From positions 62,001 through 126,000 of the IMG/VR virus record IMGVR_UViG_3300048121_001678: a stretch of 64,000 nucleotides of DNA. The stretch is one strand, 5' to 3'. The notes under the pieces are model-generated. The model was not told the DNA's origin and made no database searches. It was given only the letters and a program-made list of their open reading frames with translations. Shown one piece after another: positions 17,563 to 41,627 of this stretch. The first letter of the stretch is position 1, and the number at the start of each line of letters is the position of its first letter. The translations under genes were made by a program, and so were the position numbers.

Positions 17563-18154
17563 TACAATAATTAATCATATATTTCACATTATTATCTCTA
17601 ACCATTTTAACACCGTATCTGTGAGTTACTTGACCAGGAAAAATATATAAGTGTCCCTGTTTTGGTTTTATAACACAATCATACTTTTCAAAGTATAACT
17701 CACCACCATTATCTACATTCTTATCAAATTTTATTAATTTAGTTATATTAACAAAATCATGATGGAGTCTAATATCATCACCTTTTTCAAATGTTAGTAA
17801 CTCACTCTTGACATTCATCTCTCTAAAACCTCTACCTGATACGGACCAATAGTGATTCATCATTTCAAAACCATATTCCTCAATAACATCATAATAATCT
17901 TGATAGAATGAATGTTCATTAAATTCATACGACTTTAATCGTGTCCCCCATTTATTAGTTACCTGTACCTCTTCATTCTCAATATTTTCTAAGAATTTAT
18001 CACAGAACTCTTCAGTGAAAAAAGGAATTTCTAACACGTCAGTGCATGGGTTTCCTATCATTAAGTCCCATTCTTTGGATAATGCTTCCTTTCTCATGCA
18101 AAGAGCTTTCCATCGGTTAACGTTAGTAAAGTCAAATATTTCAGGGTATTTCAT
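17543..18154 (-). CDS. divergent PLOD-like 2OG-Fe(II) oxygenase paralog
   Basis: PCTDV...P.FTEEFCD, HHD, GGELYF, FPGQVTHRYG. Confidence 0.75.
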   Translation of the reverse strand: MKYPEIFDFTNVNRWKALCMRKEALSKEWDLMIGNPCTDVLEIPFFTEEFCDKFLENIENEEVQVTNKWGTRLKSYEFNEHSFYQDYYDVIEEYGFEMMNHYWSVSGRGFREMNVKSELLTFEKGDDIRLHHDFVNITKLIKFDKNVDNGGELYFEKYDCVIKPKQGHLYIFPGQVTHRYGVKMVRDNNVKYMINYCNENKNN

Positions 18155-25661: not shown

Positions 25662-27140
25662 TTAACTCGGCCAAACAAAGTCGGTCAAATATTGATTTTC
25701 TACGTTTATGTTACTCGCACCTATACATGCTGGTGTTGGGGTCACAAGGTCAGTAATACACTGACTACAATCGCTATAATAAATGGAAGGATTACCAAAT
25801 ATATTAGTACTAGATGTTGTTAACACATGATTTGGTGGTGCAACATATGGTTTTTGGAACATACCAACAACCGTCCAACAAGTAGTAAGAGGAGGAACAG
25901 TATATTTGAATGTTGTACCAATTGAAAGAGGACCTACAGACACATCTTGAGCGACAATACTATTTGAACTACATGCACTATACACAAATGTATATTGAGG
26001 TTGACCCTGTGACGATGAAGGTGTGATTGAAGGTGTATTAGGTGGTGTAGATGTTTGTGTAGGTGTTTGTGTAGGTGTAGGTGTTGGTGTACTACATACA
26101 CATCCTGTGTCAGGAGTTGCACTACCTCCTACACCACCACTTAAAATAATTACGTTTATTGCACATACAGTAATCACAGTATATGGATTAACATATACAT
26201 TATACGAATTACCATCACAATCAATAACCGTAAAATTAGTACCATAATTATCGTCATATCCACCATATAAGTCCCAATCTGTACAACATAGTGGTGTTGA
26301 TGATGGTGTCACTGTTGGTGTAGGTGTTGGTGTACTACATACACATCCTGGGTCAGGTGTTGCAGTACCAGTAAAATAGTTACCAGGTATTGGCATTGCG
26401 CTTACCGCACATACCGTAACCACAACAAATGGATTCACATATAAAACATACACATTACCATTACAATCTGTAACTATAAATTCAGTACCATAATCATAAC
26501 CACCGTATAATCCCCAATTTGTACAACAATCGGAACCTGTTGAAGGTGTCACCGTTGGTGTCACCGTTGGTGTTGGCGTTTGACTATGTGAGGGCGTGAC
26601 CGTTGGTGTTCTTGTTGGGCTTGAAGTAATTGTTGGCGTTAAAGTCTGAGTTTGAGTTGGTTCAGGAGTAACTGTTTGTGTGAAAGAAGGTGTTATTGTT
26701 GGTTGAGGTGTACCTGTTGGTGACGAGCCAGGTGTTGCAGACAAAGAAAGTGTTGGGGTGACACTTTGAGTAACTGAAGGTGTTAATGTATTAGTAGGTG
26801 TATGTGTTGGTGTTGGGGTTACTGAAGATGTCGGTGTCGGGCTCGGTATAATCGAATCTTCACAATCTTCACATGAAGTATAGACGTTATTAATTGAGTT
26901 TAAAATTGTGTCAGGTGAACCAGTAACATCACTATCATAATATAAACATAAAAATGAAGTACCATTTGCGTTTGTTATCGCACCATAAAACACCCCACCA
27001 ATATTAATTTGTGTTTGTCCAAATATTAAATCATCAATAATATAAAAAGCATTATTAGTACCACACTCAATAAGCTTCTTTACCGTATCACAGTCAGTCG
27101 ATTCTCTAAATATGTCAAATTTTATACTTCCAGTTATCAT
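25662..27140 (-). CDS. mucin-like Thr/Pro-rich protein with duplicated Cys-rich modules
   Basis: TP repeats; two CCTxWxLYGGYD..GTxFxVxDCxGN modules. Confidence 0.75.
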   Translation of the reverse strand: MITGSIKFDIFRESTDCDTVKKLIECGTNNAFYIIDDLIFGQTQINIGGVFYGAITNANGTSFLCLYYDSDVTGSPDTILNSINNVYTSCEDCEDSIIPSPTPTSSVTPTPTHTPTNTLTPSVTQSVTPTLSLSATPGSSPTGTPQPTITPSFTQTVTPEPTQTQTLTPTITSSPTRTPTVTPSHSQTPTPTVTPTVTPSTGSDCCTNWGLYGGYDYGTEFIVTDCNGNVYVLYVNPFVVVTVCAVSAMPIPGNYFTGTATPDPGCVCSTPTPTPTVTPSSTPLCCTDWDLYGGYDDNYGTNFTVIDCDGNSYNVYVNPYTVITVCAINVIILSGGVGGSATPDTGCVCSTPTPTPTQTPTQTSTPPNTPSITPSSSQGQPQYTFVYSACSSNSIVAQDVSVGPLSIGTTFKYTVPPLTTCWTVVGMFQKPYVAPPNHVLTTSSTNIFGNPSIYYSDCSQCITDLVTPTPACIGASNINVENQYLTDFVWPS

Positions 27141-27221
27141 TTTAATTTTCTATCACTTTCTAATAAATATCTTAGATGTCATTTCCTTTATAATAATATA
27201 ATAATGTAACAACTAAACTGA

Positions 27222-30200
27222 TTAACAGCAGTTATTACATATTGTAGTTAAATTATATGTTATCGGATTATAAAGTGCCGGTATCACAACCGTATTGTCC
27301 TGAGCACATATTGTAATTGTTGTCGGTACATTTATTATTACACCACTTACCTGTCTCTCTAAACCACATAAAGTATCATCACATTCCGTATAGTAGTACT
27401 CAAAGGTCTGTGAATTACTAAACCCTGTAACCGTTAATTCATATTGTGAACAGAATAAAACTGACGGTGTAGAACTTGGTGTTGGCGTATAAGTTGAAGT
27501 TACAGATGGAGTAACTGTATTTGTAGGTGTAACAGAGGATGTAAGTGTTTGTGTTGGTGTCGGAGTCGATGTTGCATCCAATGATGAAGATGGTGTGACT
27601 GACGCTGTCGGTGTTGGTGTCGATGTTGGAGTCGCACCTGGTGTTGAAGTTACCGTCGGTGTCGCTGTTAATGTAGGTGTAACGGATGGTGTCGGCGTAT
27701 TAGATGACGTCACAGTTACCGTTTGTGTCGGAGTGATTGTGGATGTCGGAGTTGATGTAGGAGTTCCACCAGGTGTCTCTGATGGTGTCACAGTCTGTGT
27801 TACGGTAACAGTTGGCGTAAATGTTGGAGTGATACTTGATGTGATTGATGGAGTCACCGTTAAAGTAGGTGTTACCGATGCCGTTGTTGATGGTGTCAAT
27901 GTCGGAGTAACAGATGGTGTTGCCGATGCAGTTGGAGTAACTGTTGAAGTCTGTGTTGGTGTATTTGTCTGTGTAACATCCGGTGTTTCAGAAGGTGTAA
28001 CTGTTTGTGTAGGTGTTGAAGTTGGAGTCTCAGAAGCAGTAACCGTTGGAGTAACTGAACCTGTAGGTGTATTGGTATTTGTAACCGTTGGTGTTACCGA
28101 AGCAGTCGTAGATGGTGTAGGTGTAATAGATGCCGTTGGGGTAACTGACGATGTAGGAGTTATCGTTTGTGTCGGAGTATTAGATGGTGTTACCGTAACT
28201 GTTTGAGTCGGTGTATTAGTAGGTGTTGAACCTGGCGTTTCAGATGGTGTCACTGTTTGTGTCTGTGTAACCGTCGGAGTAATACTTGCCGTCAATGTTG
28301 GAGTTACTGACGCAGTTGGTGTAATAGTATTAGTAACCGTTGGAGTAACTGATGAAGTCACCGATGGTGTAGGAGTTACTGATGAGGTTGGTGTAACCGT
28401 AGATGTTGGAGTGACAGAAGATGTTGGGGTTACTGTTGACGTTTGAGTGACAGTCTGAGTTGGTGTAGATGTTGGTGTAACACCTGGTGTTTCAGAAGGA
28501 GTTACCGTTTGTGTTTGAGTAACTGTTGGAGTCACACTCGAAGTTAATGTTGGAGTTACTGAAGCAGTTGGAGTAACAGATGAAGTTACCGTAGCAGTTA
28601 CCGATGGTGTTGGCGTATTTGACGTTGTTGGTGTTATTGTCGCAGTTGGTGTCACGGTTGAAGTCTGAGTAACCGTTTGTGTCGGAGTATTAGTTGGGGT
28701 TACCCCTGGTGTTTCAGAAGGAGTGACAGTCAATGTCGGTGTCTGTGTTGGTGTTTCACTCGCAGTCACTGTAGGTGTTACAGATGCCGTTGGGGTAACT
28801 GTAGAAGTAATAGTAGCAGTAACCGATGGAGTCGGTGTAACTGATGATGTTGGTGTCACAGATGCAGTTGGGGTAACTGTTGAAGTCTGAGTAACTGTTT
28901 GTGTTGGGGTGTTTGTAGGTGTAGATACAGGAGTCGATGATGGTGTTACCGTTTGTGTTTGAGTTACTGTCGGAGTTACACTCGAGGTAATAGTTGGTGT
29001 TACTGATTCGGTCGGTGTAACTGATGCCGTCACAGTAGCAGTAACTGAAGGTGTTGGTGTATTTGATGTAGTTGGTGTAACTGAAGCTGTTGGTGTTACC
29101 GATGATGTTGGAGTTACTGAAGCCGTTTGTGTAACCGTTTGAGTTGGTGTATTAGTAGGTGTTGAACCTGGCGTTTCAGAAGGCGTTACTGTCTGTGTTT
29201 GAGTTATTGTCGGTGTGATAGTAGCCGTTAATGTCGGAGTCACTGACGCAGTTGGTGTTACTGTCGATGTTACCGTCGCAGTCACCGATGGTGTTGGAGT
29301 ATTTGACGTTGTTGGTGTAACTGAAGCTGTTGGTGTGATTGAAGCAGTCGGAGTGACAGAACTTGTAGGGGTATTAGTTGGTGTTGAGACTGGCGTCTCT
29401 GAAGGAGTAACTGTTTGTGTTTGAGTTACCGTTGGTGTGTTACTCGCGGTCAATGTTGGTGTAACCGACGCTGTCGGAGTTACCGTTGAAGTTATAGTCG
29501 CGGTTACAGATGGTGTCGGCGTATTAGAAGTTGTAGGAGTAACCGATGCCGTTGGAGTAACAGACGATGTTGGAGTAACAGACGCAGTTTGTGTTACCGT
29601 TTGAGTCGGTGTTGATGTTGGAGTTACCCCTGGTGTTTCAGAAGGAGTAACCGTTTGAGTCTGGGTTACCGTTGGTGTAATAGTCGCCGTAACCGTTGGC
29701 GTAATAGAAGCTGTCGGAGTAACTGATGATGTAACCGTCGCAGTAACTGATGGAGTTGGTGTGTTTGATGTAGTAGGTGTGACTGACGCAGTTGGAGTAA
29801 CAGATGCGGTTGGTGTAACAGAACTTGTTGGTGTATTAGTTGGTGTCGATATTGGAGTTTCAGAAGGAGTTACCGTCTGAGTTTGAGTTACGGTCGGTGT
29901 ATTACTTGCTGTCAATGTTGGCGTAACTGACGCAGTTGGTGTGACTGAAGCAGTATTTGTTGGAGTTACACTTGCCGTTGGCGTAACTGAAGATGTTGGG
30001 GTTACCGAAGCCGTTGGTGTATATGTTGGAGTGACTGACGGTGTTGGAGTGACCGATGCAGTTGGTGTAGGTGTTGGTGTCGGAGCAATGAAGATAACAT
30101 CAACAGGACATATACAAGCCGAAGTATCAACATTAGTAACACCCCAACTACTAATCACCTCACCTGGAGGAAGAATAGAGTTGAAGTTATACTCAACCTG

Positions 30201-33200
30201 ATGGTCACCTTGTGGCCATGTTCTTGTACCTGAATATGTAAATCCTGAACTACCAACCATAAACCCATCAACCTCATAATCACATAAGGACTCAGCAGGT
30301 ATGGTAAACCCAGTATCTTTCCAAAGATTCAATCTAATCTTATCACCCTGAACAACATAACCTGTTAAATATTGTGTCGTTTGAGAACATGTTGTAGATG
30401 GAGTAACTGTTTGAGTTGGTGTAATTGTTTGAGTTTGAGTGACTGTCGGAGTAACAGAAGCCGTAGGAGTAACAGAGGCAGTTGGAGTCACAGATGCGGT
30501 AACTGTTTGAGTAGGAGTAACAGACGCAGTTGGTGTAACCGATGATGTTGGAGTATTAGAAGGTGTTACCGTAACTGTTTGAGTCGGTGTATTAGTAGGT
30601 GTTGAACCTGGCGTTTCAGAAGCAGTTACAGTCTGAGTAGGAGTAAATGTCGGAGTTACGGTTGCCGTTACCGTTGGTGTAATACTTGCCGTTGGTGTTA
30701 CACTCGCAGTTATCGTTGCCGTTACTGACGGTGTCACTGTTTGAGTCGGAGTAACTGAAGCAGTTGGTGTAACCGATGAAGTTGGAGTAACTGAAGCAGT
30801 CACCGTTTGAGTTGGGGTGATTGATGCGGTTGGTGTCACACTCGCAGTTGGCGTAACTGATGAAGTAGGTGTATTTGTTTGTGTTACCTCAGGTGTTTCA
30901 GATGGAGTGACCGTTTGAGTAGGTGTATTAGTTGGCGTTTCACTTGCTGTCAATGTTGGAGTAACAGACGCAGTTGGTGTTACAGATGCCGTCACAGTAG
31001 CGGTAACCGAAGGTGTTGGAGTATTTGTTGGTGTTTCTGTCGGTGTTGGGGTAACTGAAGACGTTGGTGTTACTGATGATGTAGGAGTGACAGATGCCGT
31101 TACCGTCTGTGTTGGAGTGATAGTTGCCGTTTGAGTAACAGTTGAAGTCGGAGTATTAGTTGGCGTACTTACAGGTGTTGACGAAGCAGTAACTGTTTGT
31201 GTAGGGGTAAATGTCGGTGTTACAGTTGCAGTGACTGTTGGTGTGATTGAAGCGGTTGGCGTAACCGACGCAGTTACTGTCGCAGTAACAGAAGGTGTTG
31301 GAGTATTAGACGCAGTTACTGTTTGTGTTGGTGTTACAGAAGCCGTTGGGGTGTTAGTTGGTGTGGTAGTATTAGATGGTGTGACAGTATTTGTTGGAGT
31401 TAGACTAGCGGTCGGAGTAACTGACGATGTTGGTGTATTTGTTGGAGTTGATACAGGTGTTTCTGAAGGCGTTACCGTTTGTGTTTGAGTAACTGTTGGT
31501 GTCACACTAGCAGTCACTGTTGGAGTAATAGACGCAGTTGGTGTAACCGATGATGTAACAGTCGCCGTTACTGTTTGCGTAGGAGTATTTGTTGGTGTTT
31601 CAGTCGGTGTTGGAGTTACCGATGATGTAGGAGTAACTGAAGCCGTCGGTGTTACTGAAGCAGTAACTGTTTGAGTCGGTGTCAATGTCGCAGTTGGAGT
31701 AACTGATGATGTTGGTGTATTTGTCGGAGTAACGGCTGGTGTTGATGAAGCTGTTACGGTCTGTGTCGGAGTAAATGTTGGAGTCACAGTTGCAGTAACA
31801 GTTGGCGTGATACTCGCAGTTGGTGTGTATGTTGGTGTTACAGTCGCAGTAATAGATGGCGTTACAGAAGCAGTTGGCGTAACTGATGCCGTTGGAGTGA
31901 CCGAAGATGTTGGGGTCACAGAAGCAGTCACAGTTTGAGTTGGTGTAACTGTATTAGTAGGTGTTACACTTGCAGTCGGAGTTACAGATGCAGTTGGAGT
32001 ATTTGTAGGAGTAACCGCAGCCGTTTGAGTCGGAGTATGTGTCGGTGTTACTGTAGATGTTGCAGTTACAGATGGTGTCGGAGTAACAGAAGATGTCGGA
32101 GTTACCGACGCAGTTGGAGTATTAGTAGGTGTTACACTTGCAGTCGGAGTTACAGATGCAGTTGGCGTATTTGTTGGTGTCACCGTATTCGATGGAGTAA
32201 CAGTATTTGTTGGAGTAACGGATGCCGTTGGCGTAACCGAAGCTGTCGGTGTATTTGTTGGTGTAACTTGAGCAGTCTGAGTAGGAGTATTAGTTGGTGT
32301 GACGGTAGACGTCGCAGTCACCGATGGTGTAGGAGTCACAGATGAAGTAGGGGTTACCGAAGCGGTTGGAGTGTTCGTAGGGGTAACACTTGCAGTTGGT
32401 GTTACCGATGATGTCGGAGTATTCGTAGGAGTAACACTCGAAGTTGGAGTAACTGAAGCAGTTGGCGTATTTGTTGGAGTTACAGTGTTTGACGGAGTAA
32501 CTGTATTTGTTGGAGTTACACTCGCAGTCGGAGTAACCGATGCTGTAGGTGTATTAGTTGGAGTTACCGCGGCCGTTTGTGATGGTGTCACAGATGCAGT
32601 TGGAGTATATGTTGGGGTTACTGTGGCCGTTCTTGTCGGAGTATTAGACGGAGTGACGGTATTTGTCGGTGTATTGGTTGGTGTAACTGTATTAGATGGG
32701 GTAACCGACGATGTTGGTGTATTTGTTGGAGTAACGGTATTAGACGGTGTAACAGTATTAGTAGGTGTATTCGTAGGCGTCTCACTCGCTGTCGGTGTTA
32801 TAGTTCTAGTTGGTGTATTAGAAGGCGTAACTGTATTCGTAGGAGTATAAGTAGGAGTAACAGTATTCGATGGCGTAACCGATGCAGTAACAGTTGCAGT
32901 CGGTGTTATAGTTCGAGTAGGTGTATTTGTTGGAGTAACGGTATTAGACGGTGTAACCGTATTCGTAGGGGTAAAGGTCGGAGTAACAGTATTCGAAGGC
33001 GTGACTGAAGCAGTTACCGTTGCCGTTGGAGTTATTGTCCTCGTTGGGGTATTTGTTGGGGTAGCGGTGTTAGAAGGGGTGACTGACGGAGTAGCCGTAG
33101 TTGAAGGGGTTAATGTAGCAGTTTTAGTCTGAGTAATAGTTGCGGTAATAGTAGGGGTCACCGAAGCAGTAGGTGTATATGTTGGAGTTACAGTATTTGT

Positions 33201-34721
33201 AGGTGTATTTGTTGGCGTAACAGTATTAGATGGTGTAACTGACGCAGTAGGTGTGACTGTCCTAGTTGGTGTATTAGAAGGCGTAACCGTATTCGTAGGA
33301 GTATAAGTAGGAGTGACAGTATTTGTTGGAGTGACCGTAGGTGTCGGCGTAGCGGTTCTAGTCGGCGTCCTTGTAGGACTTACCGAAATACTTGGAGTGA
33401 CTGAAGGAGTAACCGTCGCAGTTCTAGTCGGAGTCCTCGTAGGACTTACAGAAATACTTGGTGTAACCGTAGCGGTTCTCGTAGGTGTTCTGGTTGGACT
33501 TACAGAAATCGAAGGTGTAACCGTCGGAGTTGCCGGTGGAGTTCGAGATGGAGTAACACTCGAAGTTGGTGTTACAGCTGGAGTTCGAGACGGGGTCTTC
33601 GTCGGAGGAGGAGTACTCGTTGGAGTCCTTGTTGGAGTTCTTGTTGGAGTTCTTGTTGGGGTTGGTGGTATCGGGGTAGTTGACGGAGTTGGAGTTGGAG
33701 TTACAGGTTCATCAGAACAACATTCTTCACATGTCTCGTATACACTAGCCGAACAGTCAACAACCGCTTCACAATCAGGTACAACACCCTCAATAAAATA
33801 ACAACATCCGTCACAACTATCTAATTTAACAACTTGACCAGCATTCGGACATGGATTTAAATTAGTGACTTTAACAAACTGAGCATGATATTGATAATTA
33901 CACTCACATTCGGGTTCTATAAAGTCACACCTAACTAAATAAAGACAACACGGTTCACCTAAGTTAGTCACATCATAACCCTGATTAGGTTCCATACCAG
34001 GTTCATATGGTGTTGGCTCATTAGTATTACCCAAACCTAAACACTCATCACAACCATTTGGAAAAAGAGTATTAACTGAACCTATAAATGATATGTTAGC
34101 GGTAGGACAGTTTTCGGCACAACTTCCAACAGCGATTACTTCCCAACAAACATTTATATTATCAGAAAATGCGTCACCGACACTAAAATTATAAACATTT
34201 TGAATACAAGCGACTGATGTTTGCGTTAGACAGTCCCGAATACATGCATATCCAATATTATGAACAATATATCCGTTTAAAACATAATAACTTGGACCAC
34301 TAAGTGTTATGTTATATAAAGATTCTTCAGAGTATACAATTTCCTTACTAACAACAGGTTCATGAATGATGTCACCATCAACCATTTTAACCATATCATA
34401 TTCACCATCAACAACTAAATCTATTGTAGATATAAACTGATATCTATCATCATTTTTATGATACGCTAAGACATTTTCGTCTATAACACCTAATCCATTA
34501 ATTTGAAGATAGTTACCCTCATCATTATAGATGTCTGTAACCTCAGGTGATTGTATATTATCAACATTAAGAGTTAGTGATTCGATTTCACGGAAGTCAA
34601 TTCCTGCGATAATTTCAGGTATATCAAAAGAGTATACACTGTCACCTAATTGAACATCTTCAATGTTCTTTACGGCACCATTTGAAAGTAATACTTTTTG
34701 TCCTAATTTATAACCAGCCAT
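27222..34721 (-). CDS. giant mucin-like protein: N-terminal Hint domain, Cys-rich region, ~2000 aa Thr/Ser/Pro/Val repeats
   Basis: 2499 aa uninterrupted ORF; Hint ends YNITL....[11 protein letters not shown]; repeat tract interrupted once by a ~100 aa globular module; Cys-rich C-terminus. Confidence 0.85.
27480..33700 (-). repeat. degenerate coding tandem repeat, TP(T/S)x(S/T)V hexapeptide with higher-order units
   Basis: recurrent gttggNgtNac units on the plus strand; interrupted at about 30085-30390. Confidence 0.9.
34257..34721 (-). other. Hint (intein-like) domain, residues 1-155
   Basis: [27 protein letters not shown] matches block A without Cys1; terminal His-Asn. Confidence 0.75.
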
Positions 34722-34767
34722 TTATCGATGTAATTAACCTATAAATAATAGGTTGAACCCTTTTATA

Positions 34768-37128
34768 CTAAGATTCCTTCCTTAAACTTCCATCATAATG
34801 GTCAAACCTATCATGTTCAGTTGGTGATAGTAATAAAATACCTGGTTTAATATTACCTATTATCGTTTCTTGAAACATATATGACATCCAAGTCTGCTCA
34901 TAAGGTCGAGCCCATTTCTCAGTTAAGAACATTTTTTCATTACCATATTTTGACACCACCTGTGGCCAATTACAATAATAAATTTCACCATGTGCAAATG
35001 GTATACCTTGGAAGCTGTCTATTTTTGTGATTTTAGTTTTTGGTGCATTAGGGTCTAATCCTTGGATAGGTAATAATGGTTTTTCAGGCCAATGCTGTTC
35101 TCTAATTTTTTGAGGTACGTTATACCAAGCCCATTGAACTGTATTGTCACCGTAAAACTCAGTATATGATAACTTTAAAAAGTCAAAGTTGTTTTTCTTA
35201 GCAATTTTAAGCGAATTTCTATATAGGTTTTTAACATATCTGTTAAAACCATTTTTATCTACCTCACCCTCTTTAGGATAAAAGAACATATCATCCTCAA
35301 AAAAGAAATAATAATCATATCCATTTTCTTCAGCGTGTTCTGCAACCCATTGTCTACCACCACAAATACCTAAATTATCTTTTTTAACGTGTTCAATATT
35401 ATATTCTTTACAAAGTTCAACATATTCTTCAGTTGTCGATAAATCCGTAGAGTTATCTAACATCACCCATTGTGGTTTAGTTACAAAGTCCTCATCATAT
35501 TGTTTCATAGATTGAATCAATGTCTTTACCTGATTTGGACTATTAAATGTAATCACATAAAGTGCAACATTATCAATATCTAAATCATTAGTAATAACAT
35601 CAAACTTTAACTCATTAAGTGGTTTATGTGTATCATTTTTAACGTCTTCAAAAAACTTACTAATTAATCCATTACCCTCAATTGGGAAATACTGATAGTT
35701 TTCAGGATATCTATACAGTAAAATAGTGAAAAGAGACTCTTCAGTACCCATATAGCCCGAATTAAGAGTGTTTTTCATTAAATTGTAGTACTCATTGTTA
35801 AAATCTGCAATAGATTCTACAGGACCACCAAAGAAACCACCACGACAAACTTTATTTACTTTAGTACTTGTCATTTCACAAATCTTATCATAATCGAATC
35901 CATGAATTTCTGTCTCCGTTTCATAAGGGAATGCGATGTAACTAATTTTGTCTATTTTTGTTAATTTATCCAATACTTTATCGTGTGTAAAGTATCCAGA
36001 ATGTACGGTATTGGTAATCCCCGCATCTAACCAAAATAAATGTGTTGAATTAAATTGGTCCATTATTTTAGCATCATGTAAAAGATATGGTTTAGACATA
36101 ACCAGTGGATTATACATGTCAAGTTTAGCCTGTGTTGACTCACCTAACCAACCAACCTGATTTATCCAATCAGGATTATTTCTAATAGTTTGTATTGAGT
36201 TGTAAAACTCACCTTTAAACCATTCTTGGTCACGTGTTATAAACATAGTATTATCTCTACTACGTCTTTCAAAAACAAACTCCTCTAATTCTGCATCACC
36301 AAATACTATAAGGTTATAAGGTATTTCCAAAAATTGAGAAAACTTCTCTAAATAATGTTCAAAACTTCTTGACCATCCCTCGGCTAATTCATCTCTTTTA
36401 ATGTTCCATAACCCAGTAACTATTGTAATTCCACTTTCATTCATATCTTCATATATCTCGTTATATATTTCTTTGATGATACCTACTATGTCTTCAGATT
36501 CTTTACCATAAACGTATCCGTTATCATCAAAAGTTTTTATTATTTGTTGTTTTTCTTCATCAGATAGACTTGACCACTCTAATCTAACTACTTTAGGTCT
36601 ATACTTTGAAAAATCAATCTGTTTAAATATTTCATAATCATGTCCTTCGGCATCAATTTTTATAACGTCAAATTCAACAATATTATGTTTTTCTAATAAC
36701 CTTTCAAAAGTAATACACGGTACCTTTACTCTAAGTCCATATTTTTCAACAGTATCTCTATCACCATCACTACCCAATCCATTTTTTGGTGGATATATTG
36801 CACTCATACCCATAAAACAAGTATGCATCTTACCTTCTTGTATCGCTGAAGGACTGATAGTAATCATTTCCACATCACCATTATATGTTGAGATTGCAGA
36901 GTTTTCATACTTATTTTCATCCCCAAAGTTTTTCTTTAATTTTTCAAAATAGTATGGAATTGGTTCCACATATAAACCTTTAAAATCATAAGCATTTGAA
37001 TACCCACTTAACTCATCAAATGTTTGACCATCCATAGCCCCAATATTAATGGTAAATAATCTATGACCTTTCTTACCTAAATGATGTAATATATCATTAA
37101 AATAATCTGTATTTTTTAACTGTATCAT
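34768..37128 (-). CDS. fusion of FkbM-family methyltransferase, HtrL/YibB-like domain and GT2-like glycosyltransferase
   Basis: IGAMDG, VEP, KIDAEGHD (FkbM); TIVTGLW, YNPLVMSK, FWLDAG (HtrL); DNST, NLGICGGR, FFEDD (GT-A); start at 37128 by TAATG overlap. Confidence 0.8.
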   Translation of the reverse strand: MIQLKNTDYFNDILHHLGKKGHRLFTINIGAMDGQTFDELSGYSNAYDFKGLYVEPIPYYFEKLKKNFGDENKYENSAISTYNGDVEMITISPSAIQEGKMHTCFMGMSAIYPPKNGLGSDGDRDTVEKYGLRVKVPCITFERLLEKHNIVEFDVIKIDAEGHDYEIFKQIDFSKYRPKVVRLEWSSLSDEEKQQIIKTFDDNGYVYGKESEDIVGIIKEIYNEIYEDMNESGITIVTGLWNIKRDELAEGWSRSFEHYLEKFSQFLEIPYNLIVFGDAELEEFVFERRSRDNTMFITRDQEWFKGEFYNSIQTIRNNPDWINQVGWLGESTQAKLDMYNPLVMSKPYLLHDAKIMDQFNSTHLFWLDAGITNTVHSGYFTHDKVLDKLTKIDKISYIAFPYETETEIHGFDYDKICEMTSTKVNKVCRGGFFGGPVESIADFNNEYYNLMKNTLNSGYMGTEESLFTILLYRYPENYQYFPIEGNGLISKFFEDVKNDTHKPLNELKFDVITNDLDIDNVALYVITFNSPNQVKTLIQSMKQYDEDFVTKPQWVMLDNSTDLSTTEEYVELCKEYNIEHVKKDNLGICGGRQWVAEHAEENGYDYYFFFEDDMFFYPKEGEVDKNGFNRYVKNLYRNSLKIAKKNNFDFLKLSYTEFYGDNTVQWAWYNVPQKIREQHWPEKPLLPIQGLDPNAPKTKITKIDSFQGIPFAHGEIYYCNWPQVVSKYGNEKMFLTEKWARPYEQTWMSYMFQETIIGNIKPGILLLSPTEHDRFDHYDGSLRKES

Positions 37129-37658
37129 TATTCTATTACTATAAAGTTCTTTTGCCAACCTTTATATTCCGTCCAAGTCTTACCCAAAATCTCTGCGGTT
37201 TCAACTGCAAAATTATATTCATCTTCTCTGTGTGTGTCATCCATAATAATTGGAACTGATGTATTCAATCTATCCCAGTATTTTGCAATATTATTTCTAG
37301 TCTTAACTTGGTCTAAATTTGGTGGTCCATCAACAATAATTAACGAATATTCTTCAGGTAAACTATTGAATACAACTTCAGAATTATACCATCCGTCCAC
37401 AATATCCGCTAAGATGTAATTAGCCTTTGGTGCCAAACGTGTAAATCTTTCTTGGTGTTCAATAGCATATACGTTATGATACCTACTCAGCTCCATAGTA
37501 CCACTACCACTACCAAACTCAATGATTGTCTCACCCTTTTCAATATTTTCATCAATCCAAGAATAACACTCCATAGATATTGCCCAACCATCAAGGTTAT
37601 TCATATTAACATCCAATTCCTTTAACTTAGGAAATATATAATTTAAATCTGTATTCAT
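37128..37658 (-). CDS. class I SAM-dependent methyltransferase
   Basis: IIEFGSGSGT, IIVDGPP, IMDDT.R. Confidence 0.75.
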   Translation of the reverse strand: MNTDLNYIFPKLKELDVNMNNLDGWAISMECYSWIDENIEKGETIIEFGSGSGTMELSRYHNVYAIEHQERFTRLAPKANYILADIVDGWYNSEVVFNSLPEEYSLIIVDGPPNLDQVKTRNNIAKYWDRLNTSVPIIMDDTHREDEYNFAVETAEILGKTWTEYKGWQKNFIVIE

Positions 37659-38533
37659 AATTGCTCAAAAAACTTATAAAAACTTATTTTACCATCCAAA
37701 AATTCAGGAGTAACAGACTTATCAGTTAAGTTTGAATCGTCGTGATACCACGTATTAAATTTGAATGAGTGATAGTTTTCAGGTTTATCATACACCATTG
37801 TAGACATCATTGCTTCATGATTAAGAAGAAATTCTTTACTTAAACACATCTGAGAGTATTCCTCAAATCTTTGAAATAAATTAGGTAACTTACTCACATG
37901 ACCACCTATTATACCACCAATAGAAAGGGAGTCATACATGTGGTCTTTTTCTAAAACTTCATTCAACTTTCTATGGTCATGAAAAAATAATGTGTTTCTA
38001 ATATCAATTAATTTATCACCAAGCCAGTTGTTAATTTTAGGTATTGTATTTTCATTAAAAATACCATCATAGGTGTATCTATATTTGTTCATTGATAATC
38101 CTGTGATTTTATCCGCATTTGAATTATACCTTCTCGGATATAAACCAATATGTGATAAACCACAGTCAAACCAATATAAGTACTCTAAACCTTCTACCAT
38201 TTCGTCTTCCATCAAAGCAATTTTAGCCCATCCAACTTCTAAATAAAATTTAAACAATTCAGGGTTTTTTTCTTTGACTTCAATCATCTTTTTACTATGT
38301 CTTATATCTTGTAATTCTTTGACTTTAATAGTCACATTAGTTACTCCATTTTCATCTAAAATTTCTTGTAGTGATTCCGCAGTATTAGACCCAGTATAAC
38401 AAATAATTTGAACATTCATCTGAGATAATTGTACTAATGAATGAGTATATCTATCCCATCTTGCCTGTACTTTATGTCCAAAGAATGGGAAGTCTCCAAT
38501 TCCGAAATATAAAAAAGTTACAATTTTTGTCAT
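37655..38533 (-). CDS. HtrL/WlaTC-like glycan-modifying protein
   Basis: KIVTFLY, YWFDCGL, GGIIGG; paralogous pattern to the middle domain of 34768..37128. Confidence 0.6.
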   Translation of the reverse strand: MTKIVTFLYFGIGDFPFFGHKVQARWDRYTHSLVQLSQMNVQIICYTGSNTAESLQEILDENGVTNVTIKVKELQDIRHSKKMIEVKEKNPELFKFYLEVGWAKIALMEDEMVEGLEYLYWFDCGLSHIGLYPRRYNSNADKITGLSMNKYRYTYDGIFNENTIPKINNWLGDKLIDIRNTLFFHDHRKLNEVLEKDHMYDSLSIGGIIGGHVSKLPNLFQRFEEYSQMCLSKEFLLNHEAMMSTMVYDKPENYHSFKFNTWYHDDSNLTDKSVTPEFLDGKISFYKFFEQL

Positions 38534-40101
38534 TTTCTAAAGTAATAGTCTTCTAATAATAAACAGTCCATTTTAGTCTTATCATAGACCTTCAACGCAT
38601 CCGTGTATCTTGATAGGATAGGTTTTCCATTTACATTAAATGAAGTGTTTAATAATACACCTATACCTGATTTTTTCTCAAACTCCGTCAGTAGATTATA
38701 TAGCCAAGGATTTTGCTCTTCAGTTACAGTTTGAACACGAGCAGTACCATCAACGTGAGTTATAGAAACTAATCTCTCTCTCCATTCTTCTTTAACCGTT
38801 GGACAGAAACCCATCCATCTACTCTCACCCTCAAAGTCAAAGTATTTAGACACATCCTCTAATTTACATACAGGTGCAAATGGTCTATACCATTCTCTAT
38901 TCTTAACCTTAGCATTCAATATGTCTTTCATATCAGGATAAGCAGGATTGCAAATAATACTACGATTACCCAACGCTCTTGGTCCATGTTCTGATGTACC
39001 TCTAACAACACCAACAATTTTACCATCATTTAGGTCGTCTGTTAATCTTTCCAAATCTAACTCACTACCTCTACGTTCTTCAACGTGGGACATTAATGTG
39101 TGTTTATCTAAGATAGGTATACCAGCATATGTCACATCAACCGCCTTTTCAGGTTTCATATGATTCAAAATCATACCCGTAGCAATACCACAATCATTAG
39201 GGTTAGGTGGAACAAAAACAGGACGGTCTAATACTTGTTGTAACTTGGTATTAAGTAGAATATTAAGAGCACATCCTCCAACTGTTATCAACGGTATATT
39301 AGGATATTCATCTAAGAACGGCTGAGCCATCTCCATAAACACATTTTCAAACGCAGTCTGTGATGTTTTAGCAACATCCCATGAAGTTTGACCTGTTAAT
39401 CTATTCTGAATATCAAATACCAATCCTGTTTGTTCACCTAATTCACCCAAAAACTCAATATAGTTCAAACCGTCAGGTTTTCTTCTATAGTAGTTTTCAA
39501 AGTGTGGTAACCATTCATTATTCACGTTACCATAAGAACAAAGTCCCATGATTTTACCTGAATAAACTAAGTTACCAATATTTAATGCCGGTTCCTTACG
39601 AATATCCCCCATATAGTCACCAAATGACATATAAGGAAATCCTAAATCTAAATTGTATTTATCTAATAATGTAATTTCTGTTCTACCAGACGCTAAATAC
39701 ACGTTATAAAAACCATCATTACCACCACCATCAAAAGATATTATTAATGCGTCATCATAATCTGTCTGATACAGACCACATGCGGCATGACTAAGGTGAT
39801 GTAATTGATTTACGTGTTTTTTAGCAGGTATAAGTTGTTCATAGTGTACTTTGGTACCTCCTTCCAATGTATCCGAATTTAAGTAGTAACACGTATCGTA
39901 TTCACTGATACCAAATTCATCTTCAATGTATTTTAATATTTCTTTTAAAAGATAAGGTCTTGTGTAAGAAACGAGGTACTGTGCGTACCCCGCATTCTTT
40001 TCACTTAAAAATCTTTCAACTTCAATTACCGTAATTAATTCTCCATTCTCTTCAACCGCAACCGCAGCATTGTGAGAACCGTAAAATGATATATTTGCCA
40101 T
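38530..40101 (-). CDS. O-carbamoyltransferase (NodU/CmcH family)
   Basis: SHNAA, EVER, HHLSHA, DGGG, GKIMGL, GGCALN, D.G, GPRALGNRSI, RPFAP, HVDGTARVQT, NTSFN. Confidence 0.93.
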   Translation of the reverse strand: MANISFYGSHNAAVAVEENGELITVIEVERFLSEKNAGYAQYLVSYTRPYLLKEILKYIEDEFGISEYDTCYYLNSDTLEGGTKVHYEQLIPAKKHVNQLHHLSHAACGLYQTDYDDALIISFDGGGNDGFYNVYLASGRTEITLLDKYNLDLGFPYMSFGDYMGDIRKEPALNIGNLVYSGKIMGLCSYGNVNNEWLPHFENYYRRKPDGLNYIEFLGELGEQTGLVFDIQNRLTGQTSWDVAKTSQTAFENVFMEMAQPFLDEYPNIPLITVGGCALNILLNTKLQQVLDRPVFVPPNPNDCGIATGMILNHMKPEKAVDVTYAGIPILDKHTLMSHVEERRGSELDLERLTDDLNDGKIVGVVRGTSEHGPRALGNRSIICNPAYPDMKDILNAKVKNREWYRPFAPVCKLEDVSKYFDFEGESRWMGFCPTVKEEWRERLVSITHVDGTARVQTVTEEQNPWLYNLLTEFEKKSGIGVLLNTSFNVNGKPILSRYTDALKVYDKTKMDCLLLEDYYFRK

Positions 40102-40102
40102 G

Positions 40103-41371
40103 TTATAGTGTTCCTGTTAATCTGTCACACCAACCTTTAGATGACGAATAAGGCCATACAACCCAATAAGCTGGTTTTTCAGTTATGTTAAATTGTCTCC
40201 AAACTTTACAATAACCATCTGGGTCATTCATCATTCGGTCTATTTCTGCCCTATCAGCATCCTTTCTGTGAATAGTGTTATCTTCGCTATCGTGGAAAGC
40301 AACTACCCAATATTCATAATCTTTTTCAGGTACTTGCTCATAACCCACATCAATACAATGTTTATAGATAGTCGCAAAACTTTCTAACCATTCTTCTTTA
40401 CTCTCAAAAGTATCGATACCTGGGTTAGGTGGGTAATGTTTATCTAACGTATATTGTTGTACTCCTCTTACACCAAACTTTAATCCTGAATACTCTTCGT
40501 ACTCCTCCAAAGTTCTATTAGGACCAAAACCATACTTACCATCATGACCTTCTTGAGATTCACCATCCATACCAAATAGCTTTCTATTAGTTAAGTGAGA
40601 ATGACTGTTTTTGTTACCCCATTCTTTGTCATCATCCCATTGCTTAGTTCTACCCTTACGAGTATATTCATGCCAAATTAAGACTTTATGTGGGTGGAAC
40701 ATATCATAACCCCATGTGAATGCTCTTGCAGCTATTGAAATCTCCTCACCGTGGAAGTAATACTCAGGATTGTGTTGTACCTCTTCACTGAACTCACCTA
40801 ATGTGAAACAGAAGTGAGCAGAGTAGAATCTTGCGGGTACTGGTGTGTCTAACTCTCTCCAATTTGGAATTGTCTCAGGTAAAAAGAATACCGCACCTTC
40901 AGGAATAAATCGGTCAAATGCCATTCTCCATGGCTCTTGTACTCTAGCACCTGGGTCATTATCAGGGTCAAATGATGAAACATATCCTGTCAATAATGGT
41001 TTTGGTATCCCCATACCTTGGAGTTGTTTTACCATTTTAATCATCTCAACATCCCAATCTTTTGCAAATCTCATATGTGAGTCAATCTGTAAAGTATACA
41101 TCTCTCCTCCATATAATTGTTGAATCGAGTGTCTTGCCCAACACGCACCTTTAGAGTCCTCATAAGGGATGTCTAAAATACGAAAACGTTCGTCATCTCT
41201 ATATTTATCTAAATTGTCAAATCCATCTTCAGAATGATATTGTCTACAAATACCAAATACTAAGTTTTGTGGTCTTTTCGCATTCATTATCATATCCTCA
41301 ATTGTGTTAACTAACTCAGGGTCTCGATATGACGCCACTTGTATGAAAATCTTTTGTGCTCTTCTTGCCAT
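40103..41371 (-). CDS. GT60-like GlcNAc transferase (GlcNAc family)
   Basis: IFIQVASYRDPEL, KGACWAR, LQIDSHMRF..DWD, FHGEEI...ARAFTWGYD.FHP....WHEY. Confidence 0.85.
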   Translation of the reverse strand: MARRAQKIFIQVASYRDPELVNTIEDMIMNAKRPQNLVFGICRQYHSEDGFDNLDKYRDDERFRILDIPYEDSKGACWARHSIQQLYGGEMYTLQIDSHMRFAKDWDVEMIKMVKQLQGMGIPKPLLTGYVSSFDPDNDPGARVQEPWRMAFDRFIPEGAVFFLPETIPNWRELDTPVPARFYSAHFCFTLGEFSEEVQHNPEYYFHGEEISIAARAFTWGYDMFHPHKVLIWHEYTRKGRTKQWDDDKEWGNKNSHSHLTNRKLFGMDGESQEGHDGKYGFGPNRTLEEYEEYSGLKFGVRGVQQYTLDKHYPPNPGIDTFESKEEWLESFATIYKHCIDVGYEQVPEKDYEYWVVAFHDSEDNTIHRKDADRAEIDRMMNDPDGYCKVWRQFNITEKPAYWVVWPYSSSKGWCDRLTGTL

Positions 41372-41433: not shown

Positions 41434-41607
41434 ATGAAACTATTAAAAACAATAAAAGGTTTGGTTAAAGAATCTGAAGACAATTTAGAAAAAGCATTAA
41501 ATTCTAATGTTAATTCTAAAGAGTTAGAAGTACTAAAGGAAAATTATGAAAATTCCCTTAACCTAATATCATTATACGAAAACTTAGAAAACGAAAAAGA
41601 GGATTAA
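41434..41607 (+). CDS. small acidic helical protein
   Basis: MKLLKTIKGLVKES...; TATTTAT at 41423-41429; start could be 41428. Confidence 0.55.
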   Translation: MKLLKTIKGLVKESEDNLEKALNSNVNSKELEVLKENYENSLNLISLYENLENEKED

Positions 41608-41627
41608 TTTCTTAACCCTCTCTTTTT
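41594..41627. terminator. possible bidirectional terminator
   Basis: imperfect inverted repeat AAAAAGAGGATTAA/TTAACCCTCTCTTTTT between convergent genes. Confidence 0.45.

Follow-up and report, generated by a model that had tools for sequence, protein, structure and literature searches.

A GT60-type glycosylation cassette beside a giant Thr/Pro-repeat gene in an environmental jumbo phage: a candidate system for mucin-like O-glycosylation of virion proteins

Why would a phage keep five genes for glycan synthesis inside its tail module, directly ahead of a gene for a 2,499-residue protein made largely of repeats? The question is raised by a stretch of 64,000 nucleotides (the window), which covers 64 of the 297 kb of an environmental jumbo phage. 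The original prediction, made from the letters of this DNA, was that the five genes form an operon dedicated to the glycosylation of mucin-like, Thr/Pro-rich (TP) virion proteins. The answer that we favor, and hold to be reasonably probable, is that the phage encodes machinery for protein O-glycosylation in the cytoplasm and that this machinery modifies the TP tracts of its fibre proteins and adhesins.

The cassette consists of five overlapping genes (41371-34768), and these, like all of the TP-tract genes discussed here, lie on the minus strand. Neighbouring genes overlap or abut by 1–4 nt, as tightly coupled as had been claimed, and the 2,499-aa ORF begins 46 nt 3' of the last of them. Tail PHROG matches were found upstream of the cassette, which therefore lies inside the structural module, also as predicted. 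A terminator-like hairpin with a 14-pair stem and a T run (41594..41625, minus strand) follows the upstream tail gene, a 220-nt gap separates it from the first cassette gene, and it probably marks the start of a separate transcription unit.

The first gene (40103..41371) encodes a GT60-type glycosyltransferase of 422 aa that matches phrog_24687 (E 8e-165) and, over profile positions 96–350 of 352, PF11397 (E 4e-68; 230.9 bits against a cut-off of 21), a family carried by 120 of the 120 GT60 homologs listed. The D-x-H/D-x-D metal-binding motif of GT-A enzymes was sought, and D97-S98-H99 was found to be invariant in 15 sequences. The confident N-terminal part of a structural model matches GT-A enzymes, including polypeptide GalNAc-T1/T2, at a TM of ~0.3; the model has low confidence (pLDDT 54), and sequence searches detected no relative of solved structure, so that donor and acceptor specificity are assigned from family membership. 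GT60 has been described as the family whose polypeptide alpha-GlcNAc transferases initiate O-glycosylation of the mucin type in protists (PMC8724618), and we propose that the phage protein may be a UDP-GlcNAc:polypeptide GlcNAc transferase, the initiating enzyme of the pathway.

The second gene (38530..40101) encodes a NodU/CmcH-type O-carbamoyltransferase of 523 aa (phrog_1601, E 5e-121) with both expected domains, the Kae1-like N-domain (PF02543, E 1e-18) and the YrdC-like C-domain (PF16861, E 2e-63). Its score against the NodU model (E 5e-46) is far under the equivalog cut-off, so it is not NodU itself. The third product (37655..38533, 292 aa) is a putative glycosyltransferase resembling HtrL/YibB (WlaTC/HtrL; TIGR02192, E 3.6e-6) and the HtrL domain of the fusion described below (BLASTP E 8e-6). 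The fourth (37128..37658, 176 aa) has no Pfam match and is a probable class I SAM-dependent methyltransferase, having a G-x-G-x-G motif and a PDB match to a SAM-methyltransferase at E 0.039. The last ORF (34768-37158) joins FkbM (E 6e-18), HtrL (E 3.5e-13) and GT-A-like domains and probably starts at the ATG at 37128, which gives 34768..37128 and 786 aa. Its third domain, which contains an EDD motif, is weakly GT-A-like (phrog_842, E 1e-5; TAGT, PF20691, E 1e-3 and 19.4 bits, below the cut-off of 27.5). Among the enzyme identities first suggested, those of the GT60, carbamoyltransferase and FkbM proteins stood; those of the 292-aa HtrL-like protein, the methyltransferase and the GT2-like (GT-A) domain are weak. 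None of the five enzymes or the TP proteins has a TM segment or a signal peptide, so any modification must be cytoplasmic, where virions assemble.

What would such enzymes act upon? The giant protein (27222-34721, 2,499 aa) has 1,902 residues in Thr/Pro/Ser-rich windows, in agreement with the ~2000 residues of T/S/P/V repeats claimed for it. The tracts are 37% T, 19% P, 14% S and 11% V, and all 33 Cys lie outside the Thr/Pro/Ser-rich windows. After a Hint-superfamily domain (residues 1–155; 34257..34721) and a Cys-rich globular region that lacks a family match (156–332; 33726..34256) comes a first Thr/Pro/Ser/Val repeat tract (333–1420; 30462..33725) with degenerate higher-order DNA repeats of 66–282 bp. 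An internal Cys-containing globular domain (1421–1542; 30096..30461) separates it from a second TP tract (1543–2425; 27447..30095) with higher-order repeats of 222–252 bp. The C-terminal Cys-rich domain (2426–2499 plus the stop codon; 27222..27446) is a candidate distal or binding tip. The repeat region also differs in composition, with a GC of 0.46 against about 0.33 and an inverted GC skew. As for the term mucin, the architecture bears it out (long tandem Pro/Thr/Ser-rich domains with Cys-rich domains between them); no homology to mucin domains (vWF-D, CysD or cystine knot) was found, the Cys-rich domains having no Pfam match, and the resemblance is architectural only.

Pfam matches of the N-terminal domain are sub-threshold (Intein_splicing E 4e-4), and the domain ends in an invariant G-Y-(I/V)-V-H-N. 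A profile built from six homologs retrieves 279 proteins, and of ten sampled, five carry Hint, Hom_end_hint, Intein_splicing or PT-HINT, two carry collagen repeats and three have no Pfam match; by this profile similarity the domain appears to belong to the Hint superfamily. It recurs at the N-termini of proteins with collagen repeats and the tail-fibre S74 chaperone domain, which, together with the tail-PHROG setting, supports our inference that the giant protein is a virion fibre. A splicing intein was considered and rejected: the domain starts with Met-Ala/Val-Gly, has no N-extein or N-terminal Cys/Ser nucleophile, and is followed by Ile/Val/Asp at +1. At most, C-terminal cleavage might be possible.

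TP tracts were also confirmed in all four of the further tail-module genes for which they had been claimed. A 461-aa protein (22884..24269; PHROG 'virion structural protein') has SprB repeats and a 42-residue TP linker, and a 492-aa protein (25662..27140) has three TP tracts, 151 residues in all, between duplicated Cys-rich domains. Of the two larger proteins, one of 1,108 aa (49822..53148) combines 563 TP-tract residues with a duplicated globular domain (450-bp tandem repeat), and the other, an adhesin-like protein of 1,884 aa (53276..58930), has SprB-type repeats, a DUF642 domain and 427 TP-tract residues in seven linkers. No TP tracts occur in 22 replication-module ORFs or in the cassette enzymes. 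The TP proteins are presumably located in the virion.

Are the enzymes and the repeats linked beyond this one genome? A pattern scan for close GT60 relatives found 531 contigs among the 2.9 million in the collection; in IMG/VR the family is thus on at least 531 contigs, and its protein clusters number about 6,800. Linkage was assessed in 39 non-redundant IMG/VR loci with a GT60 cassette, and gene content over 83 loci. In 35 of the 39 loci, a TP-rich ORF is no more than two genes away from the cassette, with none further off, and the remaining 4 have no adjoining TP gene. By position, TP-rich ORFs occupy -1 in 23/38, -2 in 16/36 and +1 in 10/36 of these loci; none was found at -7 to -13 (0/96), at +3 to +9 (0/89) or inside the cassettes (0/202). 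The side varies by lineage, being upstream in some and downstream in others. The linkage was also approached from the repeats, with 120 IMG/VR stretches chosen solely by a (TP)5-coding pattern. A GT60 homolog lay within about 7 kb in 8 of them, five of the eight being just 30–39% identical, and in 5/5 stretches that contain both, GT60 and TP-rich ORF are no more than three genes apart; divergent GT60s thus keep the same company. The other 112 TP loci have no GT60 in the fetched flank, so TP tracts do not need a GT60 enzyme. The genomic linkage of the cassette with TP-repeat genes is conserved, and its tightness in relatives, in distant phage lineages and in bacteria (below) agrees with the prediction of an operon dedicated to TP proteins.

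The cassette itself is variable within fixed ends. The HtrL plus GT-A part is the conserved end in 79/83 loci, and the genes between it and the conserved first gene, GT60, are readily exchanged among relatives, so that diversifying selection probably acts on the glycan. HtrL/YibB-like proteins are the commonest accessory family (32/39 loci), and GT25, GT10, PLOD-GT and FkbM types also occur; the accessory genes of the relatives' cassettes include no sugar-nucleotide synthesis genes, flippases or polymerases. GT60 is conserved at 72–92%, against 33–65% for the N-terminus of the adjoining fibre. Carbamoylation and methylation had been predicted as part of the system; the genes are present here as lineage-specific extras outside the core, the carbamoyltransferase in 7/83 loci and the small 176-aa methyltransferase in 2/83, the two closest cassette relatives only.

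Bacterial chromosomes carry the same pairing. In Cytophagales isolates and MAGs, GT60, a carbamoyltransferase and the same FkbM-HtrL-GT-A fusion adjoin a TP-tract protein that bears an RR signal; in Verrucomicrobia and Congregibacter, GT60 adjoins Tat-signal TP-repeat proteins; and in Burkholderiaceae, it sits within T6SS clusters, next to VgrG proteins whose tails are (PT)n. Of the ORFs at distance 1–3, 17/303 are TP ORFs, against 2/275 of those further off (p 8e-4); the genomes counted include MAG-derived and related ones, which are not independent of each other phylogenetically. A substrate class is thereby suggested for bacterial GT60 enzymes, namely TP-repeat proteins, with VgrG tails and Tat-exported repeat proteins among them, of which we found no description in the literature searched.

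Experimental observations exist for Xanthomonas phage XacN1, which has the same five-gene cassette at 46–47% identity. In XacN1 and Xanthomonas phage Xoo-sp13, GT60, carbamoyltransferase, a 286-aa protein, a 246-aa protein and an HtrL-containing 546-aa protein follow in the same order as the cassette genes of the window, beside baseplate genes; for Stenotrophomonas phages CM1 and RAS14, GT60 alone was compared (45.5% identity). The Xanthomonas/Stenotrophomonas cassettes differ in their 45–48% identity to ours, a longer carbamoyltransferase (765 aa), the lack of the FkbM fusion and short PT tracts. In the 78 kb of XacN1 searched (record positions 146,001-224,000), real PT tracts occur only in the giant ORF325, which adjoins the baseplate genes and is four genes away from the cassette. 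XacN1 virions contain at least two periodate-Schiff-positive proteins, the stained bands not being assigned to proteins, and the authors suggested virion glycosylation. The cassette had never been analysed or linked to repeat substrates.

The same genes could instead remodel glycans of the host envelope during infection (LPS core, capsule or S-layer), for instance as a barrier to superinfection, with the TP tracts being unglycosylated flexible linkers that merely share the module. Jumbo-phage glycosyltransferase clusters have been so interpreted before (PMC7824862), HtrL/YibB and GT25 are classically annotated as LPS-related, and the hypervariable cassette recalls O-antigen loci. We nevertheless regard this as improbable. 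The conserved first enzyme comes from a family described as polypeptide transferases (PMC8724618); an initiating phosphoglycosyl transferase, flippase, polymerase and TM proteins are all absent; the cassette belongs to the late tail module and is separated from the fibre gene by 46 nt; its adjacency to TP genes persists through rearrangement, also in bacteria and T6SS clusters; and XacN1 has glycoproteins on its virions. These glycoproteins would also fit glycosylation of capsid or tail-tube subunits as in mycobacteriophages, with the TP adjacency reflecting a shared structural module. The known phage precedent, as it is cited in PMC12619734, is the glycosylated C-termini of capsid and tail-tube proteins, and the stained XacN1 bands would allow it. 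We give this no better chance than envelope remodelling, because TP genes are enriched solely at the positions directly adjoining the cassette, not across the flanking genes, and because bacterial GT60 loci that lack phage structural genes still adjoin TP-repeat proteins.

Far less credible is DNA hypermodification, in which hydroxymethyl-pyrimidines would be glycosylated and carbamoylated to evade restriction. Phage carbamoyltransferases can produce 5-carbamoyloxymethyl-cytosine (PMC8670742), the C-terminal domain of the fusion is weakly like TET-associated and T4 hmC glucosyltransferases, and 2OG oxygenases are present in the window. However, the TAGT match is under the Pfam cut-off (19 vs 27.5 bits), and the match of the oxygenases (E 2e-29) is to collagen lysyl hydroxylases rather than to TET/JBP. 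DNA-modifying carbamoyltransferases accompany thymidylate-synthase homologs, whereas those of unmodified contigs are flanked by glycosyltransferases (PMC8670742); here, the neighbours within 3 kb are glycosyltransferases, and among the window ORFs searched (64 of 297 kb), neither a thymidylate-synthase nor a TET family turned up. XacN1 DNA is cut by restriction enzymes, having been mapped with BssHII, NaeI and SpeI digests. Host LPS and DNA bases, the competing targets named at the outset, have thus both lost ground.

A variant of the favored O-glycosylation of TP tracts concerns the acceptor. Two paralogous 2OG-Fe(II) oxygenases (16773..18154, minus strand) are related to procollagen lysyl hydroxylase LH3 and Mimivirus L230. 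The 212-aa one matches LH3 at E 1.6e-29, over the LH catalytic domain, and L230 at E 4e-25, and its paralog matches at E 1e-6; structural ORFs of the window contain no collagen G-x-y repeats. With two collagen-hydroxylase-like oxygenases in the window, the acceptor may be hydroxyproline instead of Thr. They might make Hyp in T-P motifs to which GT60 adds GlcNAc, just as prolyl hydroxylase and Gnt1 act in turn in the Skp1 pathway of the cytoplasm, with an extensin- or arabinogalactan-protein-like product. Both lie 3–4 kb past the adhesin module, and prolyl-4-hydroxylase-like genes occur inside carbamoyltransferase/GT60 cassettes adjoining TP genes in phage lineages L121 and L130. We consider this variant rather unlikely, and the link of the oxygenases to the cassette tentative: they are 17 kb away from it, within the replication module; their nearest solved relatives are lysyl, not prolyl, hydroxylases; other relatives (44–53% identity) are on cyanophage-like contigs that lack GT60 and TP genes; and in the other GT60 loci fetched from phages and bacteria, BLASTP found no relative of the two. 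They could possibly hydroxylate the same substrates as the cassette.

How might O-glycosylation of the TP tracts proceed? The operon and the 2,499-aa fibre gene would be transcribed as a single unit, and the soluble GT60-type enzyme would add the first sugar, from host UDP-GlcNAc, to residues of the TP tracts, either Thr/Ser, the acceptors in mucin-type glycosylation of protists, or hydroxyproline, should the hydroxylase-like oxygenases act beforehand. HtrL-type and GT-A-type transferases would extend the glycan, and the NodU-type carbamoyltransferase and the FkbM-type and small methyltransferases would decorate it. The products may be extended, protease-resistant, hydrated 'bottle-brush' shafts and linkers (a 1,900-residue tract, if fully extended, would span roughly 0.5 micrometre), anchored to the particle by the N-terminal Hint-like domain and bearing Cys-rich or SprB/Ig-like binding modules. 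As first proposed, such filaments might serve as a shield, an adhesin or a bait. That enzyme and repeat recur together in bacteria as well as in hundreds of phages suggests an as yet undescribed means by which viruses and bacteria make sugar-coated filaments. More speculatively, GT60 plus a TP-repeat protein may be a widespread, uncharacterised prokaryotic and viral form of 'mucin-type' (or hydroxyproline-type) cytoplasmic O-glycosylation for cargo that exits pre-modified and folded, as lysis-released virions, T6SS VgrG spikes or Tat substrates. In jumbo phages of freshwater Bacteroidota, it might have grown into half-micrometre glycan-coated fibres, the island between conserved initiator and terminal enzyme being shuffled from strain to strain as part of a glycan arms race against hosts or grazers.

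Phage self-glycosylation is documented for few phages, and there only on short tails of capsid and tail-tube proteins; the present system, if true, would be virion glycosylation on a mucin scale, with an initiating enzyme from a family that has so far been studied in protists. Confirmation would change the view of how abundant freshwater jumbo phages adhere to particles and are grazed, and of the chemistry of their surfaces. Glycoengineering of the mucin type in the bacterial cytoplasm would gain a compact operon, and the reason for the long PT linkers on phage and bacterial surface proteins, an old question, would become open to direct test.

Several known systems offer partial parallels. The GT60 enzymes of Dictyostelium and Trypanosoma cruzi share PF11397, the presumed Ser/Thr/Pro-repeat acceptors and the presumed first sugar, GlcNAc, but are type II membrane proteins of the Golgi that modify secreted mucins, whereas the present enzyme is soluble, viral or bacterial, encoded in the same operon as its presumed substrate and would act in the bacterial cytoplasm. 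The Skp1 pathway (PhyA, Gnt1 and further cytoplasmic transferases) is likewise soluble, cytoplasmic and stepwise, with separate nucleotide-sugar transferases and a starter from PF11397, a family founded on the Skp1 Hyp-GlcNAc transferase; the phage's hydroxylase-like oxygenases and the fucosyl-/galactosyl-transferase-like genes of related cassettes add to the likeness. It places one glycan on one residue of a regulatory protein, in contrast to thousands of potential sites on structural repeats. Nearest in prokaryotic logic are the serine-rich repeat adhesins (GspB, Fap1; GtfA/GtfB), where the gene of a giant Ser/Thr-rich fibrillar adhesin adjoins a cassette that adds cytoplasmic O-GlcNAc and then strain-variable sugars; these are non-viral, with Ser-rich repeats, initiation by a GT4 (GT-B fold) pair and accessory SecA2/Y2 export. 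Mycobacteriophages Che8, Corndog and Myrna also use phage transferases to O-glycosylate their own virion proteins in the cytoplasm, but on short C-terminal extensions of capsid and tail-tube subunits, and GT60, a giant repeat protein and carbamoyl/methyl decoration genes are not described there. Mimivirus, with its fibrils and L230, and the chloroviruses coat surface fibres with glycans by virus-encoded machinery, although these are eukaryotic giant viruses with other transferase families and collagen-like or non-repeat substrates; the L230 hydroxylase domain is homologous to the window oxygenases (E 4e-25), and relatives of the phage carry PLOD-GT and GT25 genes.

The window derives from an uncultivated jumbo phage of 297,164 bp, and a search of GenBank phages gave no near-identical DNA. 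Nearly all of its long ORFs lie on the minus strand. Replication and recombination genes occupy 1-20.6 kb (primase, exonuclease, an SbcC-like protein, metallophosphoesterase, sigma factor and amidase), and 20.6-64 kb holds a tail and adhesin module, with PHROG assignments of minor tail protein, tail protein and virion structural protein and with SprB, PKD and DUF642 domains. No tRNAs were found in the window. The replication module also encodes a T5orf172/MUG113 (GIY-YIG-related) domain protein (8592-9191) and a phage sigma factor (5714-6538; phrog_351, E 2e-50), both unrelated to the genes discussed below.

Within the tail module lies a cassette of five genes (41371-34768, minus strand), each overlapping or abutting the next by 1-4 nt. 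It is preceded by a gap of 220 nt and, before that, by a terminator-like hairpin (41625-41594) that closes the tail gene upstream. A scan for sigma-70-type promoters returned sites not in excess of those in shuffled sequence. The first gene encodes a PF11397/GT60-type glycosyltransferase (E 4e-68; phrog_24687, E 8e-165), a member of the PF11397 family as judged by sequence. The second is a carbamoyltransferase in which both domains of the family are present (phrog_1601, E 5e-121), and the third, of 292 aa, is a weak relative of HtrL/YibB (TIGR02192, E 3.6e-6) that also matches the HtrL domain of gene 5 by BLASTP (E 8e-6). Gene 4, of 176 aa, has a G-x-G-x-G SAM-binding motif and a marginal methyltransferase match (PDB, E 0.039). 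Gene 5, whose likely start is the ATG at 37128, fuses an FkbM methyltransferase with HtrL and GT-A-like domains. Neither hydrophobic segments nor signal peptides were detected in any of the five proteins. No relatives of the GT60 with solved structures were found by single sequence or profile query; its AlphaFold model was of low confidence (pLDDT 54), which we attribute to a shallow alignment, and gave Foldseek matches only to generic GT-A folds. The enzyme labels of the original prediction are thus largely confirmed, with weak support for the small methyltransferase and for the GT2 label on the last domain of the fusion, and its description of the operon and of the Thr/Pro-rich (TP) tract genes is borne out at the window loci.

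The ORF for a protein of 2,499 aa (27222-34721, minus strand) starts 46 nt past the end of the cassette. Its residues 1-155 (34257-34721) form a Hint-superfamily domain and residues 156-332 are Cys-rich, after which Thr/Pro/Ser/Val repeats occupy residues 333-1420 and 1543-2425 (TP windows, 1,902 residues), separated by a Cys-containing globular domain and followed by a Cys-rich C-terminal domain. A Pfam search of the Cys-rich domains gave no match. The repeat DNA consists of degenerate higher-order units of 66-282 bp, with GC content up to 0.46 versus ~0.33 and an inverted GC skew. Plus-strand ORFs at 27595-28206, 31935-32850 and 33313-33801 were rejected as genes, being antisense artefacts of low-complexity repeat sequence. 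Four further genes (at 22884, 25662, 49822 and 53276) carry 42-563 residues of the same type of tract between globular modules, and no TP tracts occur in the 22 replication-module ORFs or in the cassette enzymes. In a protein of 1,108 aa, a 450-bp tandem duplication (50539-51396, 83% match) has doubled a globular domain plus the TP linker that flanks it.

The assignment of the 2,499-aa protein as a fibre is based on its Hint-like N-terminal domain. A word-index homolog search with the N-terminus gave no matches, its AlphaFold model was of low confidence, and its Foldseek matches, to Hedgehog Hint and BIL domains, fell short of significance; the identity of the domain was decided by profile search and not by the structure model. 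A profile built from six homologs of the N-terminus retrieved 279 proteins, and five of ten sampled matches carry Hint, Hom_end_hint, Intein_splicing or PT-HINT domains. The domain has an invariant C-terminal His-Asn and no N-terminal nucleophile, and a splicing intein was rejected for the latter reason; the domain may be limited to self-cleavage or to a role as an anchor. In two sampled proteins, a Hint-like domain at the extreme N-terminus is followed by collagen repeats, and one of them ends in an S74 chaperone domain typical of phage tail fibres. Since the same domain heads such proteins elsewhere, a Hint-like head on a fibrous shaft seems to be an undescribed architecture that recurs among phage fibres.

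A scan of IMG/VR for close relatives of the GT60 identified 531 contigs, and 80 fetched loci were grouped into 39 clusters at 95% GT60 identity. GT60 is always first in a run of 2-9 same-strand genes, which in 79 of 83 loci is closed by an HtrL plus GT-A protein; few loci include the carbamoyltransferase (7 loci) or the small methyltransferase (2 loci). The original prediction named a lack of association between cassette and TP-repeat genes in relatives as a refuting result, and it withstands this test in the locus counts. TP-rich ORFs are found at position -1 relative to the cassette in 23/38 relatives' loci, at -2 in 16/36, at -3 in 9/34 and at +1 in 10/36, compared with 0/96 at -7 to -13, 0/89 at +3 to +9 and 0/202 within cassettes; a TP ORF is no more than two genes away in 35 of 39 loci. 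The TP genes are upstream of the cassette in most lineages and downstream in that of the window; therefore, the adjacency has outlasted rearrangement. The GT60 is 72-92% conserved, versus 33-65% for the neighboring fibre N-terminus. The reverse test used 120 IMG/VR stretches selected solely for encoding (TP)5. In eight of them a GT60 homolog lies at most roughly 7 kb away, with an identity of only 30-39% in five cases, and in all five stretches that contain both, GT60 and a TP-rich ORF are at most three genes apart. The other 112 have no GT60 homolog within roughly 7 kb, which indicates that TP tracts as such can occur without GT60.

Between GT60 and the HtrL plus GT-A gene of the relatives (loci L004-L083) lies a hypervariable island of 133 proteins in 39 sequence clusters, resembling the diversification of O-antigen loci. 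Its accessory genes include GT25, two GT10 fucosyltransferase-like genes, a PLOD-type GT and FkbM, and support the idea of a strain-variable glycan that is lengthened stepwise in the cytoplasm.

Bacteria were scanned for GT60 using one genome per species. The closest relatives (65-71% identity) are on low-GC MAG contigs labelled Saprospiraceae, Bacteroidia or Bacteroidetes (L205-L211), among them the 230-kb contig CALJOK010000014.1; these probably belong to jumbo phages and were binned along with host DNA. They and the SprB repeats point to a Bacteroidota host for the phage of the window, perhaps Saprospiraceae. A published group of Bacteroidota jumbo phages, the moraphages, has four core glycosyltransferase families. 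More distant relatives (30-55%) are on real chromosomes. Among Cytophagales, in the isolate Jiulongibacter sediminis JN14-9 and in an Arcticibacterium MAG, GT60, carbamoyltransferase and the same FkbM-HtrL-GT-A fusion as in the window face a protein of 262-326 aa, in which an RR-type signal is followed by ~150 residues of TP tract and, at the C-terminus, by a small domain. GT60 likewise adjoins a protein with TP repeats behind a textbook Tat signal in a Verrucomicrobia MAG, and one with a Tat-like signal, TP repeats and C-terminal anchor in Congregibacter; such pairings of GT60 with small twin-arginine/TP-repeat proteins were seen at chromosomal loci L224 (Jiulongibacter), L234, L232 and L240. 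A coherent route would be glycosylation in the cytoplasm, after which the folded cargo would leave by Tat. In Rhodocyclaceae, a GT60-methyltransferase fusion precedes a TP(E)-repeat protein. In Achromobacter, Trinickia, Cupriavidus and Paraburkholderia (L241, L246, L258, L243), GT60 is within a T6SS cluster (TssF, E 1e-224), and the adjoining VgrG has a C-terminus of long (PT)n, (PEPST)n or acidic repeats, which suggests that the spikes of these clusters may be glycosylated. Over 63 bacterial loci, TP-rich ORFs number 17/303 at distances 1-3 versus 2/275 farther out (Fisher p 8e-4; loci not phylogenetically independent); high-GC genomes inflate spurious Pro/Thr-rich frames in these counts, and the named examples are clear proteins.

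Among cultured phages, the Xanthomonas phages XacN1 and Xoo-sp13 have the same five-gene order as the window, with a GT60 47-48% identical, and their cassette is convergent with baseplate genes and with the gene for a protein of 3,313 aa. Stenotrophomonas phages CM1 and RAS14 have GT60 homologs 45.5% identical (GT60 match only). In the 78 kb of XacN1 searched (record positions 146,001-224,000), genuine PT tracts occur only at the C-terminus of the 3,313-aa protein. The XacN1 virion contains at least two periodate-Schiff-positive proteins, which were ascribed to phage glycosyltransferases, one of them the GT60 homolog (PMC5852040).

We lean towards O-glycosylation of the TP tracts, initiated by GT60 and built by the cassette. 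The cassette and fibre gene would be transcribed together, late; the soluble GT60 would initiate O-glycans on TP tracts with host UDP-GlcNAc as donor, the HtrL-type and GT-A transferases would lengthen them, and the carbamoyltransferase and methyltransferases would cap them, each step being assigned from family membership alone.

Hypermodification of phage DNA by the cassette is possible in principle, and a phage carbamoyltransferase does make 5-carbamoyloxymethyl-cytosine (PMC8670742). However, in that study DNA-acting carbamoyltransferases adjoined thymidylate-synthase homologs, and those on unmodified contigs were flanked by glycosyltransferases, as in the cassette (PMC8670742); resemblance to TAGT was under threshold. 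The XacN1 genome was mapped with BssHII, NaeI and SpeI digests (PMC5852040), a result unexpected for DNA with glycosylated hydroxymethyl-cytosine. Jumbo-phage glycosyltransferase clusters have been interpreted as remodelling host envelope glycans (PMC7824862), and HtrL and GT25 carry LPS-type annotations, but this reading does not explain that the conserved first enzyme belongs to a polypeptide-transferase family (PMC8724618), that a membrane component is absent, that the cassette sits within a late structural operon, or that adjacency to TP genes recurs in unrelated contexts. A further, less probable alternative is that the cassette glycosylates virion proteins other than the TP proteins; the bacterial GT60/TP loci argue against it.

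Glycosylation of TP tracts may also involve the two paralogous 2OG-Fe(II) oxygenases at 16773-17411 and 17543-18154, the first of which is homologous to the lysyl-hydroxylase domain in human LH3 (E 1.6e-29) and in Mimivirus L230 (E 4e-25). No collagen G-x-y runs were found in the structural ORFs, and the TP tracts could be the substrate. At two other TP-tract phage loci (L121, L130), prolyl-4-hydroxylase-like genes are inside the carbamoyltransferase/GT60 cassette, making possible a Skp1-like route of proline hydroxylation and then GlcNAc addition to hydroxyproline. In marine contigs of about 170-186 kb (L287-L348), oxygenase homologs (44-53%) form the C-terminal part of ~560-600-aa proteins in a conserved block; the contigs look like T4-like cyanophages and have neither GT60 nor TP genes near the homologs, so the link between oxygenases and cassette is tentative.

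The cassette system would be a form of virus-encoded virion glycosylation, its chemistry being predicted; the nearest viral precedents are glycosylation of mycobacteriophage capsids and tail tubes and of Mimivirus fibrils. Glycosylation of serine-rich-repeat adhesins in Gram-positive cocci works most alike, although its initiating family differs from GT60. The phage system also resembles the protist GT60 mucin pathway, but in the bacterial cytoplasm. Literature searches for GT60/PF11397 in phages, mucin-like phage proteins and glycosylated VgrG found no precedent, and those for TP-repeat substrates of bacterial GT60 found no description; the sole account of the cassette in the literature searched is a two-sentence suggestion in the XacN1 paper (PMC5852040). 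The TP-tract protein is not a mucin by homology. Mucin domains extend ~0.25 nm per residue in general, which for the TP tract of the 2,499-aa protein, if extended, would give a length of about 0.5 micrometre.
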